From positions 271,036 to 335,035 of IMG/VR virus record IMGVR_UViG_3300028394_002328: a stretch of 64,000 nucleotides of DNA; one strand, written 5' to 3'. This document shows positions 2,588 through 12,123 of the stretch, in pieces (position 1 is the stretch's first letter; each line of letters opens with the position of its first letter). A model generated the notes under the pieces. That model searched no databases. It was given only the letters and a program-made list of their open reading frames with translations, and was not told where the DNA came from. Made by a program: the position numbers and the translations under genes.

Positions 2588-2661
2588 TGGAGCGGGTAGA
2601 GGGAATCGAACCCTCGTATGCAGCTTGGAAGGCTGCCGTTCTACCATTGAACTACACCCGC
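2588..2661 (-). tRNA. tRNA-Gly(UCC)
   Basis: GCGGGTG acceptor, loop CT TCC AA, CCA. Confidence 0.95.
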
Positions 2662-2666
2662 ACTGT

Positions 2667-2756
2667 TGGTGGAAGCGGTGAGATTCGAACTCACGGACCC
2701 CTTTCAGGGCCTTTAGTTTTCAAGACTAACGCAATCGGCCTCTCTGCCACGCTTCC
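2667..2756 (-). tRNA. tRNA-Ser(UGA)
   Basis: Loop CT TGA AA, long variable arm, CCA. Confidence 0.95.
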
Positions 2757-2760
2757 CTAA

Positions 2761-3016
2761 TAAGGTGCTCTGCATCCCTCGGCGGTAATTATAGCGCATC
2801 AAGCATATGGACCTCAGAACAACAATTAGTTCTTACCACACACCATCACACACGCCCTCCACCCGCTCTCGACAGGGATCGTTATCGCATTGCCAGCGCC
2901 GGTTAGGTTAAACCGCATGTTACCATGTGAAGATATTACTCTTCAGAACCACCCGTACATATCACTGTACTTCATATCCTCTGGGTCAGAGTATCCGTTG
3001 ATTAGACGGAACGTCT
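2761..3016 (-). ncRNA. Candidate structured ncRNA between two tRNA-Ser genes
   Basis: GC-rich spacer with about 8 abutting hairpins; no convincing ORF. Confidence 0.6.
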
Positions 3017-3104
3017 TGGCGGAGAGTATAGGATTCGAACCTATGCACCGATTTCTCAGCGACGGTTTAGCAAACCGTTGTATTAACCACTCTACCAACT
3101 CTCC
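3017..3104 (-). tRNA. tRNA-Ser(GCU)
   Basis: Loop TT GCT AA, long variable arm, CCA. Confidence 0.95.
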
Positions 3105-3109
3105 AATCT

Positions 3110-3187
3110 TGGTGCCTCCGGAGGGACTTGAACCCCCAACCAACGGCTTATGAGGCCGCTGCTACTAACCGATTGAGCTACAGAGGC
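3110..3187 (-). tRNA. tRNA(CAU): Ile2 (lysidine) or elongator Met
   Basis: Loop CT CAT AA; paired 1-72 and no GGG/CCC anticodon stem, so not an initiator. Confidence 0.88.
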
Positions 3188-3322: not shown

Positions 3323-3351
3323 ATTGTACACGACACCTGCATATTTGTCAA
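3323..3351 (-). promoter_or_regulatory. Sigma70-type promoter for the distal tRNA block
   Basis: TTGACA-17 nt-TACAAT. Confidence 0.8.
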
Positions 3352-3927
3352 TTATTTTAAGAGACTTTCTACCCGATCTAGAACTAGATCCCAATGCTCA
3401 GTAAACCTGTGACCACCGTTCTCCAAGATGGTTGTTGTTGCGTAAGGAAAGCCTTCTAGCATAGATTCATGGGGGATGACCTCATCATCTTTAGCGACAA
3501 ACAAACTCACCAAACTAGGGGAATAGATTTCACGGACATGTTTCCGCATACTATCTAGTTTATCTAAATGTGCTATAGAAACAAGAAATTCTTCACCAGT
3601 ATAATAGTTTTTGTTTGGTCCTAACTTCTCCTTAAGAGTCTCGCTGGGGGTAGAACTAGGATTAACTAACACAGCACAACTGTCATACAAGTGACCGAAA
3701 TAATTTGCGTAAAATGCTCCTAGACTAGTACCAACGAATACCAATTTTTCGTTTGGTTCTCGGGATTTCATAAAGTCACAGACAATACCGTCGACCAACT
3801 CACCCACTAGATCGGGGTCAAAGGGCAGATCGGGTGCGATTACCTTATCGTCACCGAACCGTTTTCTGAGAGCGGTGACCTTATCACTAGTGCCTGAACT
3901 CGCAAAACCATGTAAGTAAACTATCAT
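3352..3927 (-). CDS. YqiA/YcfP-family alpha/beta hydrolase (esterase)
   Basis: YLHGFASSG, GTSLG nucleophile elbow, GGHRF; ATG at 3927. Confidence 0.85.
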   Translation of the reverse strand: MIVYLHGFASSGTSDKVTALRKRFGDDKVIAPDLPFDPDLVGELVDGIVCDFMKSREPNEKLVFVGTSLGAFYANYFGHLYDSCAVLVNPSSTPSETLKEKLGPNKNYYTGEEFLVSIAHLDKLDSMRKHVREIYSPSLVSLFVAKDDEVIPHESMLEGFPYATTTILENGGHRFTEHWDLVLDRVESLLK

Positions 3928-3958
3928 ATTGACGCCCAAAAGTCACTGTCTGAACTAT

Positions 3959-3987
3959 AGTATAGCAAACTATAGAATATTTGTCAA
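3959..3987 (-). promoter_or_regulatory. Sigma70-type promoter
   Basis: TTGACA-17 nt-TATACT. Confidence 0.75.
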
Positions 3988-4613
3988 ATTTTGGATACGA
4001 TATTGTCAGGAAGATGCTTTAAATCAAAGCCTAAATTAGATAATTTTTCTTTACCATTTGGACTTAATTTGACAAATCCAACTATTATCTTTTCATGCGG
4101 TTCGCCCTGAATTAATCTAGTATAATGATATCCATCAGGATTTAAATCTAATATCTTTTTACCAGTTAAAAACTCAGCATATTTATTGTCAATTGGTTTT
4201 GCGCCTGCTTTAAGCATTAATTTTTCAGCAGGTCCGCTTACTTCTGCCCATGCTCTTTTTGTTTTAATGTCATCTTTTTTGAGCATGTTATAATCTTTTA
4301 ATCCTTGTGCAGTGGCTTTATATTCACCTTCAGGATTAAGTTCTGTTTCAGTAGCACTAGCAATCATTTTAAAATTATCCGTATTAGATACTTGTTTATA
4401 AACACCTAATGCAGTTATATGATCACCACGGCGAACTACTTTCCAATAACCTAAATCATTTGCTAATTCTTCAGCACTATTAGCGCTTTTAAAGCCGCCA
4501 ATCTTTTTATAACTACGCTGAAGCATATCCCATATCTTATCCGCATACTTCATTTTTTGTTCAGGAGTATGTAGATTAAGAACCTTTTCAACTAATAATT
4601 GATGATAACGCAT
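3984..4613 (-). CDS. Hypothetical protein
   Basis: 209-aa ORF preceded by TAAATA. Confidence 0.7.
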   Translation of the reverse strand: MRYHQLLVEKVLNLHTPEQKMKYADKIWDMLQRSYKKIGGFKSANSAEELANDLGYWKVVRRGDHITALGVYKQVSNTDNFKMIASATETELNPEGEYKATAQGLKDYNMLKKDDIKTKRAWAEVSGPAEKLMLKAGAKPIDNKYAEFLTGKKILDLNPDGYHYTRLIQGEPHEKIIVGFVKLSPNGKEKLSNLGFDLKHLPDNIVSKI

Positions 4614-4673
4614 CTAGTATTTATGCAATGCGGCAATATCATATCTACAATGGCGTTGTATAAATAACAATAT

Positions 4674-5555
4674 ATGAACAATATTTATTTAGTTACGTTT
4701 CCAGGTGGCGGTGGTGGTGATTTTTTATGCTCTCAAATTTCTAAAGACATTAATTTTTATCCATTAGAATCAAGCATGAATACTGCGACTAATACATGTG
4801 AGTTAGAGAATCCATTTTTAAAATGGAATATTGACCTAAAATCTCATCATAAATTTAAGGTTTTAGAAATTTCTGATGTTATGTTAAAAGAAATAGAATT
4901 ATATTATAATGAAAAAGATTTAGTAGCACCTACTCATTTTTTCGGTAATCTTAGTGAAATTAAATTGCCTAGGCTTAAAGGAGTTCACCTATACACTAAA
5001 CAATTTTTTCCCCTTTTCTATTTGTTATATTGGATAAAAAGATTGTCTGGCCCGAAGCACTTTATAGATAAAGAGACTTTTTTAAGAAAGGTAACAGGTG
5101 CTAGTAGCTTACCCAATGATGCATATGCTAAATTCTTTAGAGATAAAATAGCAGATAATATATTGGCAAATAGAAATTTTGTATATGATTTTGAACTAAT
5201 AGCCGCAACTAGATTACTTGGTAATGCCATAGATTGCATTGAAAGGTTTTATAGATATTATTGTTTTATTTTTTCCTTTCCTAATCCTCACACCGTATCT
5301 AAAGATTGGATTCCATATAATATAGATAATCTCTATCTAGACCCAGTTAATAACTCAAAAGAATTTTGTCAACTGTTCAACATGGAAAAACCAATTAATC
5401 CCGAAATTATTGCATCATATTATTCCAAAAATTTACAGGTAATCGAAGAAACATTTGGCGAACCATATGAAGTTTTTATTCTCGGTGATTGGTTATCAAA
5501 ATTAAAAAAATGGATTGAACTTAAATGTCCAAATTCATATTCAATTAATTTTTAA
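4674..5555 (+). CDS. P-loop/sulfotransferase-like protein, paralog A
   Basis: N-terminal FPGGGGGDFL glycine loop; paralog of next gene. Confidence 0.55.
   Translation: MNNIYLVTFPGGGGGDFLCSQISKDINFYPLESSMNTATNTCELENPFLKWNIDLKSHHKFKVLEISDVMLKEIELYYNEKDLVAPTHFFGNLSEIKLPRLKGVHLYTKQFFPLFYLLYWIKRLSGPKHFIDKETFLRKVTGASSLPNDAYAKFFRDKIADNILANRNFVYDFELIAATRLLGNAIDCIERFYRYYCFIFSFPNPHTVSKDWIPYNIDNLYLDPVNNSKEFCQLFNMEKPINPEIIASYYSKNLQVIEETFGEPYEVFILGDWLSKLKKWIELKCPNSYSINF
5429..5482 (+). repeat. 54-bp exact direct repeat (second copy 6334-6387)
   Basis: aaatttacaggtaatcgaagaaacatttggcgaaccatatgaagtttttattct occurs in both paralogs. Confidence 0.9.
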
Positions 5556-5572
5556 TTTTTATAGGAAAATCA

Positions 5573-6469
5573 ATGAACAATATCTATTTACTTGCATTTA
5601 ATGGCGGATCAGGAGGAGATTTTTTATGCTCTCAAATCTCTAAAGATAGTGATTTTTATCCATTAGAATATAAAATTAATCCTATTACCAATACCTATGA
5701 TTTAGAAAATCCATTTGCAAAATGGAATTTAAATACAAAAAACCAATTCATGCAAGATTTACTAGTTACTACCGACAATACATTAGAAAATATAGATTTA
5801 CATTATAATGAAAAAAATTTAGTAGCACCTATTCATTTTTTTAGTTATTTTAATCAAGCGCATTTAGATACAATATATAGATTACCTAGACTTAAGATAA
5901 TTAGAGTATATAGTAATCAATTAACTCCCCTTTTTTATTTATTACTATGGATAAAAAGATGGGTTCTCATACAAGAGTGTGAAAATAAAGAGATTTTTAT
6001 TAGAGAACAAATTTCAACGTATACCTCTAAATTCGATATAGCTGCTAGAAATAAAATACTTGATAGCATATTTGCTAATAGAAATTATTATTATTCATTT
6101 GAAATTTTAGCCATGTCAAATTTATTTAATAATTCCACGGATTTTGTTAAGAATTTTTTTTTAAAAAAATATAATTATTATAATACCTTCGTTCAAAATA
6201 ACACTGGTAAATGGATTCCATATAATATAGATAATCTCTACTTAGACCCAGTTAATAACTCAGAAGAATTTTGTCAACTTTTAAATATGGAAAAACCAAT
6301 CGATCCCGAAATTATTTCAAACTACTACTTTAGAAATTTACAGGTAATCGAAGAAACATTTGGCGAACCATATGAAGTTTTTATTCTAGGTGATTGGTTA
6401 TCAAAATTAACAGAATGGGTACAAATTCAGTGCCCAAATGCATATTCAGTCGATTTTAAAATTTTGTAA
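5573..6469 (+). CDS. P-loop/sulfotransferase-like protein, paralog B
   Basis: FNGGSGGDFL; C-terminus nearly identical to paralog A. Confidence 0.55.
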   Translation: MNNIYLLAFNGGSGGDFLCSQISKDSDFYPLEYKINPITNTYDLENPFAKWNLNTKNQFMQDLLVTTDNTLENIDLHYNEKNLVAPIHFFSYFNQAHLDTIYRLPRLKIIRVYSNQLTPLFYLLLWIKRWVLIQECENKEIFIREQISTYTSKFDIAARNKILDSIFANRNYYYSFEILAMSNLFNNSTDFVKNFFLKKYNYYNTFVQNNTGKWIPYNIDNLYLDPVNNSEEFCQLLNMEKPIDPEIISNYYFRNLQVIEETFGEPYEVFILGDWLSKLTEWVQIQCPNAYSVDFKIL

Positions 6470-7414
6470 TATAGGAACCCATTGTTCTCTTAGTTGAGTC
6501 ATACTATTTTTAAAACCAGCAGGTGTTAATTCTCTTTCTTCTATAAACATATAATTTTGATCAAAAAACTTTTTGGCTTCAACAGATCGTATTGTACGAG
6601 AAAAGTTTCCCACATACCATTTAACTATGTCCTGATCAGTGCCTTTGGGCAATATGATACCCCAAGCTGCATATACATTCATTCCCGGCACCCATCGATT
6701 CATCAACGGAGCATCAATTCCTACTAAAGGTTTTTCTCCGCATATACTAATGAATTTAATTTTTCCACTAGATAACAATGTAGCGGCTACCGCAGTAGGG
6801 ACAATACCAAACTCAACATGACCTCCGGCAACGTCTTGTGCGGCTTGAGCAGGGCCTTTATATCCCACAGTCTTTACTAATTCACTAACTTTGACCTTTG
6901 TGGACATATATTCAAATGCTAATTTATGAGCACCGCTACCAGCAGCAAAAGTAATAGGTTTGTCAGTATTTTTAATTCTTTCTAATAATTCAGGCACACT
7001 ATTAACGGTGCTACCACTATAAGCAATAATAGCTAGCGGGCTTTTAGCAATAGTAACTACATATTCAAAATCATCTAATGTATATTTTACAGCTGGTTTA
7101 TTGAAGAATTCACTAGTGACCCAAATTCCTTGATGACTAGGCACATAGATATTATAGCCATCTGCGGGTTTTTTGATGAATTCATTCATGGCCACTACAC
7201 CATCTGCACCTGGCTTATTTTCAATAACAAAATTAATTTTAGGATTTAACTTTTCTAATATACTACTAACACCCCTAAAACTAATTTCATTACCCGACCC
7301 AGGTGCAAACCCTACAAGAACATTTATTGGTTTTGTAGGCTCCCAAGCATATGCTGATACCGACAAACAAGTTAATACAATTATTTTAACAATGTTACTA
7401 AAACATCTGACCAT
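6446..7414 (-). CDS. Bug/TctC tripartite tricarboxylate transporter substrate-binding protein
   Basis: Signal peptide, PTKPINVLVGFAPGSG, ENKPGADG, AGSGAH, YKGPAQAAQDVAGGHV. Confidence 0.9.
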   Translation of the reverse strand: MVRCFSNIVKIIVLTCLSVSAYAWEPTKPINVLVGFAPGSGNEISFRGVSSILEKLNPKINFVIENKPGADGVVAMNEFIKKPADGYNIYVPSHQGIWVTSEFFNKPAVKYTLDDFEYVVTIAKSPLAIIAYSGSTVNSVPELLERIKNTDKPITFAAGSGAHKLAFEYMSTKVKVSELVKTVGYKGPAQAAQDVAGGHVEFGIVPTAVAATLLSSGKIKFISICGEKPLVGIDAPLMNRWVPGMNVYAAWGIILPKGTDQDIVKWYVGNFSRTIRSVEAKKFFDQNYMFIEERELTPAGFKNSMTQLREQWVPILQNFKID

Positions 7415-8649: not shown

Positions 8650-8724
8650 TGGCGGTCCCAAGGGGTAACGATCCCCTTCTTTCAGCGTGACAGGCTGATG
8701 TGCGTCCATGAACACTTTGAGACC
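8650..8724 (-). tRNA. tRNA-Asp(GUC), atypical T loop ATCGTTA
   Basis: Loop CT GTC AC; acceptor GGTCTCA/TGGGACC; CCA. Confidence 0.88.
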
Positions 8725-9152
8725 TAACTCAATCTACTGCCAATGGGCATTCTACCATTACGAATGTCATTGCCCAACTTAGCAGCCTCTTTAATTCTTT
8801 GTTTGCCCTCGTCGCTAGCATTCTTGACACCCCAAGTTTCAGTTTGAGTATGACAATTAGGACAAAGATAACGATAATTTTCTAGTCTATCGTTTTTGTT
8901 GTTTCCGTCAATGTGGTCAATCTGAAGTCGTATCGGCTTGCCGTTATATTCAGATATACCACATTCAGTACATTTGTACTCGGTGAATCTTCTAAAATAT
9001 GAAAGTGCGTTTGACTTAGTGTAAATACCACTTTCAATCTTTTCTTTTAATACATGTTGTATACCACATTCATTACAGCAATATTTGCCCTTACTTTGAG
9101 AGGGGTGCCACATAAATTTGGTATCGCAGTTTAAGCAGTTCTTTTTCGGCAT
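8724..9152 (-). CDS. HNH endonuclease with Zn-finger motifs
   Basis: LQIDHIDGNNKNDRLENYRYLCPNCH; several CxxC. Confidence 0.9.
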   Translation of the reverse strand: MPKKNCLNCDTKFMWHPSQSKGKYCCNECGIQHVLKEKIESGIYTKSNALSYFRRFTEYKCTECGISEYNGKPIRLQIDHIDGNNKNDRLENYRYLCPNCHTQTETWGVKNASDEGKQRIKEAAKLGNDIRNGRMPIGSRLS

Positions 9153-9522: not shown

Positions 9523-9528
9523 ATAAAC

Positions 9529-9735
9529 TTACAACTCTACACGCTCACGAAAATAAGAGTCCCAACCCTCTTCAGGGGGAGCTCCTATTACACGAGTTTC
9601 AACAAAAAATCGATAATCTCCAAAAGTTACAGTGTATTCACGGGCGGCGTCAACTGCCTGTGAACGTGATTCATAGACACCAAGAACTTCTGTCCCTTCA
9701 GGACCTTCATCAGTGACTAGAACATATACTTGCAT
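9529..9735 (-). CDS. Small hypothetical protein
   Basis: 68-aa ORF with AAGGA Shine-Dalgarno, downstream of a consensus promoter. Confidence 0.7.
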   Translation of the reverse strand: MQVYVLVTDEGPEGTEVLGVYESRSQAVDAAREYTVTFGDYRFFVETRVIGAPPEEGWDSYFRERVEL

Positions 9736-9776
9736 GATAGTTCCTTTTCTGTTCGTTTTTTCTCACTACAGAAACT

Positions 9777-9805
9777 ATTATACATACCTACCGATTAATT
9801 GTCAA
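9777..9805 (-). promoter_or_regulatory. Perfect sigma70 consensus promoter
   Basis: TTGACA-17 nt-TATAAT. Confidence 0.88.
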
Positions 9806-9843
9806 ACGCTTGTTGCTAGTTGTTTTTTAGCAACAGTGATATT

Positions 9844-10088: not shown

Positions 10089-10174
10089 TGGTGGAGTGTA
10101 CTGGGATCGAACCAGTCGTGCCATAAAGACGGCGGATTTACAGTCCACTGCATCACCATTGATGCTTCCACTCC
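10089..10174 (-). tRNA. tRNA-Tyr(GUA)
   Basis: Loop CT GTA AA, long variable arm, CCA. Confidence 0.93.
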
Positions 10175-11562: not shown

Positions 11563-12123
11563 CTAACTCAATAAAATTCTACTATGTTTTGGTAATCCTG
11601 CTCTTAAATAATCCATCTGATCAGCCAAAATATTACGATTTTGTAATATCATATTTTCAAAATGGTTTGGCACATATGGAACATATAGTAGTTCCATTCT
11701 TGCCTCTTTAAGAGTTTTACACCCTTTCATAGCGTTACAATCTTTACATGCGGTAACTACATTCATCCATACATTTTCCCCACCTTTGCTTTTGGGGATA
11801 ATATGGTCTCTGCTTAGGCTGTTAACATTGGGAAAATAATCACCACAATATGCACAGATATGTCTATCTCTACCAAACAATGTTCTATTGCCTAGTGCTA
11901 CTTTACTATGCTTAGTTGGATTAAATCCATGTCCTTTGATAGCAATAATTGATTGAGTTTCAATGTAACTTAGTTCGCCATTGCGTTGAATTCCACCACG
12001 ATATTTAGCCACAATTTCACCCATAGTCCATGCAACACTTTTGGTTGCATGGTAAAGAATTGCGTTATCATATGAAATCCACTGTCGGGGCGTTCCCGAT
12101 ATATCCAGTGCTAAAACTGACAT
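11563..12123 (-). CDS. HNH endonuclease (McrA-like)
   Basis: RDRHICAYCG...DHIIPKSKGG..W.NVVTACKDCN..KG. Confidence 0.9.
   Translation of the reverse strand: MSVLALDISGTPRQWISYDNAILYHATKSVAWTMGEIVAKYRGGIQRNGELSYIETQSIIAIKGHGFNPTKHSKVALGNRTLFGRDRHICAYCGDYFPNVNSLSRDHIIPKSKGGENVWMNVVTACKDCNAMKGCKTLKEARMELLYVPYVPNHFENMILQNRNILADQMDYLRAGLPKHSRILLS

Follow-up and report, generated by a model that had tools for sequence, protein, structure and literature searches.

A covariation-supported structured RNA encoded between two tRNA genes of a lake phage

The DNA analysed here (the window, 64,000 nucleotides) is the final 64 kb of the 335,035-bp IMG/VR virus record IMGVR_UViG_3300028394_002328, which comes from a lake phage. 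The phage genome has a GC content of 37%, and its large terminase shares 49% identity with that of the Pseudomonas jumbo phage PA5oct. ARAGORN identified 18 tRNA genes within ~12 kb, all on the minus strand, and Rfam added a nineteenth. The tRNA genes of this array are separated by spacers of 5-9 nt (ARAGORN). HNH endonuclease genes are present in the same array, suggesting that the region is prone to insertions.

One gap in the array is 260 nt long (window positions 3016-2757, minus strand, which is also the sense strand of the RNA described here). This element is bounded by tRNA-Ser(GCU) upstream (3017-3104) and tRNA-Ser(UGA) downstream (2667-2756; ARAGORN and Rfam-type calls), both on the minus strand. 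tRNA-Ser(GCU) encodes its CCA, and the element begins 2 nt (AG) later. The GC content of the element is 48-52%, compared with ~30% in adjacent genes. A first-pass annotation, made by a model from the sequence alone, had described a GC-rich spacer directly after this CCA, and that description held. The conserved RNA spans 3014-2766 and is followed by an unconserved spacer of ~9 nt (2765-2757) before tRNA-Ser(UGA). RNA positions (p) are given below as 3017 minus the window coordinate, and all features lie on the minus strand.

A sigma-70-like promoter (3323-3351, minus strand; TTGACA and TACAAT separated by 17 nt) lies ~40 nt upstream of tRNA-Leu(UAA). It matches 11 of 12 consensus positions, and this match is the only evidence for it. 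No terminator-like site was found between 1700 and 3450. The promoter likely marks the start of an operon that contains tRNA-Leu, tRNA-Met, tRNA-Ser(GCU), the element, tRNA-Ser(UGA), tRNA-Gly, and tRNA-Leu. A separate 320-nt gap (9523-9843) was considered as a second RNA and rejected, as it contains a promoter and a 68-aa DUF7336 gene.

We built a covariance model (R1; 206 positions, 41 pairs) from 61 homologs. R1 matches window positions 2763-3016 (minus strand) at 180.1 bits (E = 5e-59) and covers model positions 1-206 of 206. The window sequence is in the R1 seed, so this match is partly by construction; homologs outside the seed (L223-L240) score 147-196 bits. The R1 scan identified a single copy of the element in the 335-kb genome.

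To score covariation, we used an alignment to R1 (A10) of 81 distinct sequences of type A, one of two family types that differ in their 3′ domains. The scored structure comprises 13 helices with 52 pairs; three of its elements are pseudoknotted and absent from R1. Across the 81 sequences, paired cells amount to 95.6%, compared with 77.2% in shuffles (0 of 500 shuffles reach the observed value), and 42 of the 52 pairs have changed on both sides. The covariation score is 0.515, compared with 0.165 in shuffled alignments and 0.05-0.10 when partners are slid. Eleven covariation-supported pairing elements are packed into ~200 nt. The supported fold contains eight nested helices, two pseudoknots, a kissing-loop contact, and, in a subtype, an extra hairpin capped by a GNRA loop; a K-turn is inferred from a sequence pattern.

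Folding energy does not contribute to this evidence. The single-sequence minimum free energy is -80.7 kcal/mol, with z = -1.28 on the minus strand (19 of 200 shuffles do as well) and z = -0.17 for plus-strand folding. These values are no better than chance, and the proof of structure therefore comes from the comparison of homologs. The initial proposal of a structured RNA was strongly upheld by that comparison. We consider it close to certain that the element is a real, selected, and intricately folded RNA gene.

The 5′ domain is ~68 nt long (RNA positions 3-69) and consists of an ACGU tail, hairpins P1 and P2, the junction GAUGAGAA, and hairpin P3. The unpaired tail ACGU (3011-3014; p 3-6) is kept in most members found without imposing it in the search; L234 and L236 have the variant tail ACCC. 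P1 (2994-3010; p 7-11 with 19-23) has a 7-nt loop, CUAAUCA, and all five of its pairs covary in A10. P2 (2979-2991; p 26-29 with 35-38) is helix 3 of the scored structure, is 99.7% paired, and has double changes at three of its four pairs. Between P2 and P3 lies the purine-rich conserved junction J2/3 (2971-2978), which reads GAUAUGAA in this phage and GAUGAGAA in the consensus.

Two tertiary contacts tie the 5′ domain together. The first is the pseudoknot PK1, in which the P2 loop ACCC (2986-2983; p 31-34) pairs with a downstream strand, GGGU (2951-2954; p 63-66). PK1 (helix 4) is 99.7% paired and all four of its pairs covary. Ten complementary PK1 combinations occur across both family types, including ACCC/GGGU, GUCC/GGAC, ACCG/CGGU, ACUC/GAGU, and CCUC/GAGG. 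The second is a kissing contact between the loop of P3 (2955-2970; p 47-51 with 58-62), whose positions 53-56 read UGAU, and positions 15-18 (AUCA) of the P1 loop. Kissing pair 15:56 occurs as A-U (42 sequences) and as G-C (37 sequences). At least four consecutive kissing pairs are kept in 35 of the 36 distinct loop combinations, and PK1 is likewise kept in 35 of 36. An analogy between the P1-P3 kiss and the D-loop/T-loop contact of tRNA was dropped, as the tRNA model gives it no support.

The 5′ domain is followed by a second pseudoknot and a set of short hairpins. In PK2 (helix 6), the strand GGU (2948-2950; p 67-69) pairs with ACC in the P4 loop (2908-2906; p 109-111). Pair 93:162 of PK2 is G-C in 61 sequences and C-G in 15; PK2 has only 3 bp, and its support is therefore weaker than that for PK1. 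P4 (2899-2915; p 102-106 with 113-117, closed by C71:G118) comprises helices 7 and 8 and has double changes at four pairs. A different pairing, of GGUGGUU with AACCGG, was returned by RNAalifold on a small subtype alignment and was rejected in favour of P4, which covaries family-wide. P5 (2886-2898; p 119-121 with 129-131) is a 3-bp stem with a conserved 7-nt loop, UGGCAAU, and its third pair is C-G in 67 sequences and U-A in 14.

Between PK2 and P4, a subtype carries two further hairpins that covary in the nine subtype members compared. P4a (2928-2945; p 72-77 with 84-89) is a subtype-specific insertion found in 11 members and has changed from G-C to A-U at two pairs. P4b (2916-2927; p 90-93 with 98-101) has a covarying stem and a GNRA tetraloop, GUAA (2920-2923). 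This loop is kept as GNRA in every subtype member, where it reads GUAA, GCGA, GAAA, or GAGA.

The 3′ domain is closed by the long-range helix P6 (helix 10), in which the strand at 2874-2879 (p 138-143) pairs with that at 2774-2779 (p 238-243). P6 is 99.2% paired and has double changes at six of six pairs. P7a (p 146-147) and P7b (p 151-154; both 5′ strands within 2863-2871) form helices 11 and 12 by pairing with 2780-2785 (p 232-237). Both covary, with GCGG/CCGC changing to GUGG/CCAC and to GAGG/CCUC. P8a (helix 13) is 98.3% paired, and six of its six pairs covary; its 5′ strand (p 161-166) lies with the K-turn signature at 2845-2856, and its 3′ strand (p 219-224) lies with the non-bulged K-turn strand (p 215-218) at 2793-2802, a segment supported by both covariation and conservation.

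The K-turn signature consists of a 3-nt bulge, UGU (p 167-169), followed by G170 and A171 opposite A218 and G217 and by U172 opposite U216. GA is present on both strands in 38 of 63 type A members, and covariation is seen in the adjoining C-stem. We infer from sequence alone that P8 carries a K-turn in most members; no data address the kinked geometry. Distal P8 (2803-2844) varies in length and sequence, contains a hairpin at 2816-2833, and lacks covariation. Two further segments are identified by conservation: the junction J8/7, AUAAUUA (2786-2792; p 225-231), and the 3′ tail CAGAGCAC (2766-2773; p 244-251). An 8-nt complementarity of J8/7-P7 to the 530 loop of 16S rRNA was set aside as probable chance, and it is partly engaged in P7b.

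The first-pass annotation had listed eight inverted repeats, all of which are present on the minus strand: 2994-3010 (P1), 2979-2991 (P2), 2955-2970 (P3), 2929-2944 (P4a), 2916-2927 (P4b), 2900-2915 (P4), 2886-2898 (P5), and 2816-2833 (the tip of P8). Seven are supported by compensatory changes in homologs. The eighth lies in the variable region, is unchanged in close relatives, and has no covariation evidence. The statement that several loops are GNRA-like was too strong, as the P4b loop is the only one. Missing from the annotation were three long-range helices (P6, P7, P8a), the two pseudoknots, and the loop-loop kiss.

We compared the element with known RNAs by searching Rfam 15 with cmscan. 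No family matched the element when the window was searched at the gathering threshold, when positions 2650-3120 were searched at E up to 10, or when six homolog loci were searched at E up to 1. The same search detects every tRNA as well as a genuine group I intron at the homolog locus L028 (85.5 bits, E = 1.9e-20), indicating that it is sensitive. The GOLLD and ROOL models gave no match in any of these searches, so the earlier suggestion of a GOLLD-like domain is not supported. Models of HDV-family ribozymes matched neither the window nor the six homolog loci. There is no RF00005 (tRNA) match inside 2757-3016 at E up to 10, nor any ARAGORN call for a tRNA or pseudo-tRNA. No group I intron model matches the element, which sits between two intact tRNA genes. 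RNase P RNA gave no Rfam match, and its conserved GAGGAAAGUCC block is absent from the element sequence. ARAGORN found no tmRNA in the window; a weak tmRNA_permuted match (13.6 bits) coincides with the T-arm region of tRNA-Ser(UGA).

The RNA family is also undescribed in the literature we searched. A 2023 catalogue based on IMG/VR (PMC10690425) lists 10,006 candidate structured RNAs without names, and the motif may already be among them. With that reservation, absence from Rfam 15 and from the searched literature makes it likely that the family is new, which fits the other earlier suggestion of a new class.

Our searches recovered over 100 distinct sequences of the family, of viral and metagenomic origin. 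Lake phages account for most of them, and several of these phages have genomes of 150-360 kb. Contigs of close relatives, found through neighbouring proteins, contain the same spacer at 100%, 94%, and 92.6% identity. In another close relative (L004 = L015), the spacer is only 30 nt long and keeps the P1 hairpin alone, implying that at least one lineage can do without the RNA.

Several search patterns extended the family. A pattern based on the P1 sequence identified 16 viral loci or contigs, mostly ~3 nt after a tRNA 3′ end (Gly, Ala, Met, Pro, Ser), and most of these then carry 200-255 nt of recognisably related sequence. A looser pattern for the 5′ domain identified 78 viral loci (49 unique, two chance hits) and at least 120 metagenome stretches, many of them false positives. 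GC-rich metagenome false positives were removed by requiring P2 complementarity and by the covariance model. Since these patterns impose the P1 sequence, we used an independent pattern anchored on P5, which identified 21 further viral loci with differing P1 stems. An early impression that ACGUUCCG...CGGAUA is invariant was thereby rejected as a product of the search pattern; P1 varies and covaries.

BLAST queries representing this phage's own copy, type A (a consensus-like member), and type B gave no true homolog among 50,697 GenBank phage records. R1 likewise found nothing in T4 (rnaC and rnaD included), PA5oct, or Phosso. A strict pattern gave two hits in 185,579 species genomes, of which one is real: a 5.9-kb tRNA-array contig binned into a MAG. 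At least one member is marine (L105, Global Ocean Sampling), and the others come mainly from lake samples. The family is essentially confined to uncultivated phages; many of these are large, and the element usually lies within or next to their tRNA gene arrays. Cellular genomes, and hence prophages, essentially lack it.

The carriers of the element are diverse. Their terminases share 99, 70, 58, 54, 37, 35, 34, 32, and ~30% identity with that of the phage studied here. The RNA itself is 58-79% identical in the distant carriers compared, four of which are among those with terminase data. The RNA is conserved far beyond the surrounding proteins. Conservation across such diverged carriers implies strong purifying selection, horizontal spread, or both.

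These observations bear on the possibility that the element is not a functional RNA: the remnant of one or more tRNA genes, a scar left by an intron or mobile element, a gene for a small protein, or a spacer that is GC-rich by chance. Three points could be read in favour of such an origin, namely the modest folding z-score of -1.28, the variable presence of the element among close relatives, and the HNH endonuclease genes that mark the array as insertion-prone. Against it stand the double changes in 42 of 52 pairs across 81 sequences and the conservation of the RNA across phages with terminases only ~30% identical. No tRNA or intron model matches the element, while the L028 intron is readily found. 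The only open reading frames over the element overlap a tRNA gene, and substitutions follow helices and not codons. We regard a non-functional element as all but excluded.

Family members differ in their 3′ parts. We identified 12 unique members of type B, which have only the 5′ domain in common with type A and form their own covarying helices in a different 3′ domain. Three further members (L021, L129, and L133) have still other 3′ parts. The 5′ domain alone is common to types A and B and to the odd members, and the 68-nt 5′ domain thus defines the family.

The element lies on the strand of the adjacent genes in all members. Among the 78 unique members, 25 have a tRNA identified by ARAGORN that ends 0-3 nt upstream (2 nt for 16 of them); these tRNAs represent 13 different anticodons. 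Upstream of most type B members is a long-armed tRNA not detected by ARAGORN. In other members, the element starts 0-5 nt past the stop codon of an open reading frame. Downstream, a tRNA is found 184-317 nt from the first base of the element in 46 of 78 unique members. Open reading frames beside L092, a member outside a tRNA context, belong to no informative Pfam family.

One reading of this context is that the element is a cis-regulatory or ligand-sensing RNA that controls the transcription, processing, or stability of downstream tRNAs or genes. In favour of this reading, the complexity of the fold, with its pseudoknots and putative K-turn, is aptamer-like. Some members lie directly upstream of open reading frames that encode GroES-like (L033 and L038) or MazG-like (L034) proteins, and in some type B members the element finishes with a hairpin and then a U-tract. 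However, the downstream genes are mutually unrelated and most often are tRNAs of many identities, new promoters follow the element at several loci (including L083 and L092), and type A has no conserved alternative terminator/antiterminator pairing. Cis-regulation thus remains possible but appears unlikely.

Metatranscriptomes from lakes provide evidence that the element is transcribed. Library X15 contains a 323-nt contig over window positions 2794-3112 at a depth of 56.8, with zero cover in protein-coding bins 201-1600, 2001-2400, and 3401-6000; this contig is a variant from a relative and not the exact phage. Library X17 contains a 163-nt contig over 2901-3057 (depth 2.7), with zero cover of flanking open reading frames, and library X18 a 262-nt contig over 2860-3041 (depth 3.7), with low cover throughout the flanking open reading frames. 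In a DNA dataset (X1), cover of the element is ~260 and that of flanking open reading frames is flat at ~165-430, with higher values over tRNA genes. These figures make it likely that the RNA is far more abundant than its neighbours, a judgement reached without mapped RNA ends. Contigs of three RNA libraries cross the junction between tRNA-Ser(GCU) and the element, indicating that unprocessed precursor or contaminating DNA is present. The earlier description of the RNA as processed remains an inference, based on position inside a tRNA operon and on RNA-library contigs.

We consider it somewhat more likely than not that the element is a stable, compact RNA that is released from the transcript of the tRNA operon and acts in trans on a partner not yet known; the mechanism, the processing, and the action in trans are all inferred. 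The promoter at 3351-3323 would transcribe the element together with six flanking tRNAs. Nucleases that mature tRNAs would then excise it, through RNase P cleavage at the 5′ end of the next tRNA and 3′-end processing of the preceding one. RNase P cleavage at the 5′ end of tRNA-Ser(UGA) would set the 3′ end of the element. The excised element would accumulate as a stable, compact RNA and would act in trans during infection through an unknown protein, RNA, or small ligand. Because the element is encoded in a tRNA operon, the partner is most plausibly tied to tRNA or translation. A search of the phage genome for hints of this partner found RtcB, Ro60/TROVE, and a CCA-adding enzyme all absent.

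The main rival is a self-cleaving ribozyme, or a cis-acting processing signal, formed by the 68-nt 5′ domain. Cleavage near its own 5′ edge would free the upstream tRNA or mRNA, and the 3′ domains would be accessory. Several observations are consistent with this possibility. First, conservation has a sharp onset, 0-3 nt from a tRNA 3′ end or 0-5 nt from a stop codon, regardless of the upstream gene. Second, the unpaired ACGU tail and the junction GAUGAGAA are highly conserved. Third, the 5′ domain is a compact double-pseudoknot of a size typical of small ribozymes, and it is the only part common to types A, B, and the odd members. Fourth, P1 alone persists in L015 after the deletion and precedes a terminator in L020. 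Finally, there is a precedent in theta ribozymes, which lie within 1 nt of phage tRNA 3′ ends (PMC10879173).

Other observations weigh against self-cleavage. No known ribozyme model matches, and the topology differs from the nested double pseudoknot of HDV. The tRNAs upstream of type A members encode CCA and are followed by 1-3 extra nt, and cleavage at the edge of the element would thus leave a tail and a cyclic phosphate that need trimming. Contigs from three RNA libraries span the junction, even where depth is only 2.7-3.7, although this is not decisive. Genes in these arrays are normally packed closely, with 5-9 nt between tRNAs. There are no data on cleavage, and we regard the ribozyme reading as possible and as less probable than a trans-acting RNA excised by tRNA-maturing nucleases.

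A bolder interpretation, which can only be called possible, is that the element represents a new catalytic or machine-like class of RNA that serves tRNA biology in large phages. In one conceivable version, the 5′ domain would be a ribozyme that cleaves itself or processes tRNA. In another, the RNA might capture a host factor directed at tRNA or translation, such as a defence nuclease. If this interpretation is true, the phage tRNA array gains an undescribed, RNA-only accessory function. Large structured RNAs with many conserved unpaired nucleotides are rare, and past cases have been ribozymes, riboswitches, or parts of RNA-protein machines. The family described here numbers ~100 distinct members or more, and its sequence has diverged far less than the terminases of its carriers.

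Comparison with known systems places the element beside several classes of RNA without assigning it to any. K-turn-containing riboswitch aptamers (SAM-I, lysine, T-box, and cobalamin) resemble it in combining a K-turn arm, only inferred for the element, with loop-loop or loop-strand pseudoknots and conserved junctions in a domain of 100-250 nt. By eye only, GGGAAGCGGGUGGA and UUACCGCC recall the cobalamin core and a T-box sequence; these resemblances were dropped, as no Rfam model of any of these aptamers matches. Riboswitch aptamers are found in the 5′ leaders of metabolic genes, whereas the element is found inside tRNA arrays.

Theta ribozymes, the HDV-like ribozymes of gut phages, resemble the element in position, as they adjoin the 3′ ends of phage tRNAs to within 1 nt, and their tRNA neighbours span many isotypes (PMC10879173). 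Only 4.5% of the tRNAs associated with theta ribozymes encode CCA (PMC10879173), whereas the element follows CCA-encoding tRNAs after 1-3 nt. Theta ribozymes are ~60-70 nt long, form the nested double pseudoknot of HDV, and are found chiefly in the Bacteroidota and Bacillota phages of the gut. The element is 190-260 nt long, comes mainly from lake samples, and has a different, covariation-supported topology of three hairpins, a kissing loop, and a loop-strand pseudoknot.

GOLLD and ROOL are likewise large, ornate, pseudoknotted RNAs of unknown function; their genes are carried by phages and prophages and frequently lie close to tRNA islands. In GOLLD, one half is conserved and the other variable, and both RNAs form cages (PMC12286853). 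The element is similar to GOLLD in that its 5′ domain is common to types A and B while its 3′ half differs between them. Like GOLLD and ROOL, the element might form a homo-oligomeric, RNA-only particle, with a function that arises from assembly. The shared genomic niche supports this alternative, as do conserved unpaired self-complementary words (ACGU in the 5′ tail; AAUU or UAAUUA in J8/7) and a subtype GNRA loop with no identified receptor. However, the element is three to four times smaller (190-260 nt, compared with roughly 600-800 nt for ROOL and GOLLD; ROOL ~580) and has no sequence or model similarity to either, and the palindromes are short and incompletely conserved. Unlike GOLLD and ROOL, it is also essentially absent from cellular genomes and prophages (one true hit in 185,579 species genomes). 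Without data on oligomerisation, we consider assembly unlikely, though still possible, and continue to favour a compact RNA that would act in trans.

The closest analogy in layout is provided by rnaC and rnaD of phage T4, known as its species 1 and species 2 RNAs. Both are small and stable, have no known function, and lie within the tRNA cluster of the phage. They are made from tRNA precursor transcripts. When R1 was run with filters off on the T4 tRNA region, rnaC gave no match and the start of rnaD gave 1.0 bit (E = 9.6), which is within the range of chance given that the best match in the 8-kb stretch scores 5.1 bits; as a positive control, R1 reaches 180 bits on the genome of the phage studied here. 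The niche that the element shares with the T4 RNAs, GOLLD, and ROOL, the phage tRNA island, remains unexplained. The element is small enough for biochemistry and structure work, and the role of non-tRNA RNAs in phage tRNA clusters could thus become directly testable. In T4, tRNA-Arg is followed on the same strand by a 1-nt gap, rnaD (119 nt), a 6-nt gap, and rnaC (139 nt), ~264 nt together. These are two separate RNAs, with a tRNA-like T-arm end on rnaC, whereas the element is one unit whose ends are tied together by P6 and P7.

We identified type B members of the RNA family on viral or metagenomic contigs L024, L028, L036, L040, L041, L043, L061, L064, L065, L068, L136 and L174. These elements contain the 5′ domain common to the family but a different 3′ domain, in which UUAUUCCUAAC precedes a first hairpin and GGACAGCC separates this from the terminal hairpin, CACCUGUAAGUUGGAUAAAUUAGGGUG. 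UUAUUCCUAAC is apparently complementary to the terminal loop GUUGGAUAA. Such a pairing, inferred from this complementarity and untested, might add a further pseudoknot. The usual upstream neighbour of type B elements is a long tRNA that ends in CCUGACUA without an encoded CCA (for example, L068:1030-1131) and is not called by ARAGORN. The type B carrier L028 also encodes a group I intron (L028:7071-7287, 85.5 bits) and has tRNA-model matches of 125-128 nt at 246-370 and 522-649.

The 5′ domain itself varies in a few homologs. Only in L227:5716-5908 do the P1 and P3 loops, each GUAGCA(A), lack complementarity, and this member might rely on another tertiary contact. A separate variant group (L234:913-1116, L235:8197-8399 and L236:10617-10848) has a 5′ tail of ACCC or GUCC, rather than the usual ACGU, and a J2/3 junction of GAAGGAG or GAAGUG, rather than GAUGAG. 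Because both segments vary jointly in these three loci, the 5′ tail could touch the J2/3 junction.

Hairpin P1 occurs without the rest of the element at two places: L015:7389-7420 (equivalent to L004:4804-4833) and L020:5183-5240. In L015, a close relative of the window phage, P1 is the sole remnant between the two tRNA-Ser genes, while in L020 an intrinsic-terminator-like hairpin directly follows it. Solitary P1 may have its own role, such as a processing or protein-binding site. Alternatively, the solitary copies may be deletion remnants.

A second large gap in the tRNA array (window 9523-9843, minus strand), 96% conserved in two relatives, was considered as an RNA gene and rejected; it contains a conserved TTGACA-17-TATAAT promoter (minus strand) and a 68-aa ORF with a DUF7336 match (9529-9735, minus strand). 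The array probably totals 19 tRNAs, since Rfam identifies a tRNA not called by ARAGORN at 10092-10174 (minus strand, 34.3 bits) and tRNA-Tyr(GUA) precedes tRNA-Trp at the corresponding position in relatives L003 and L005.

The window also carries host-like metabolic genes, all on the minus strand, for a radical SAM protein (17-1054), a family-2 glycosyltransferase-like protein (1063-1731) and a TctC-family tricarboxylate-binding receptor (6446-7414, E = 1e-23). Two adjacent plus-strand ORFs of ~295 aa each (4674-5555 and 5573-6469) have no Pfam match; they share an N-terminal GGGGDFLCSQISKD-like motif and appear to be paralogues.

Two minus-strand HNH endonuclease genes lie inside the tRNA array (8724-9152 and 11563-12123), with matches across the two to Pfam families HNH and HNH_5 (the latter at E = 1e-16). 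Their presence is consistent with a stretch of the genome where insertions and deletions are common. The T4 tRNA cluster likewise includes a homing endonuclease gene, segB.
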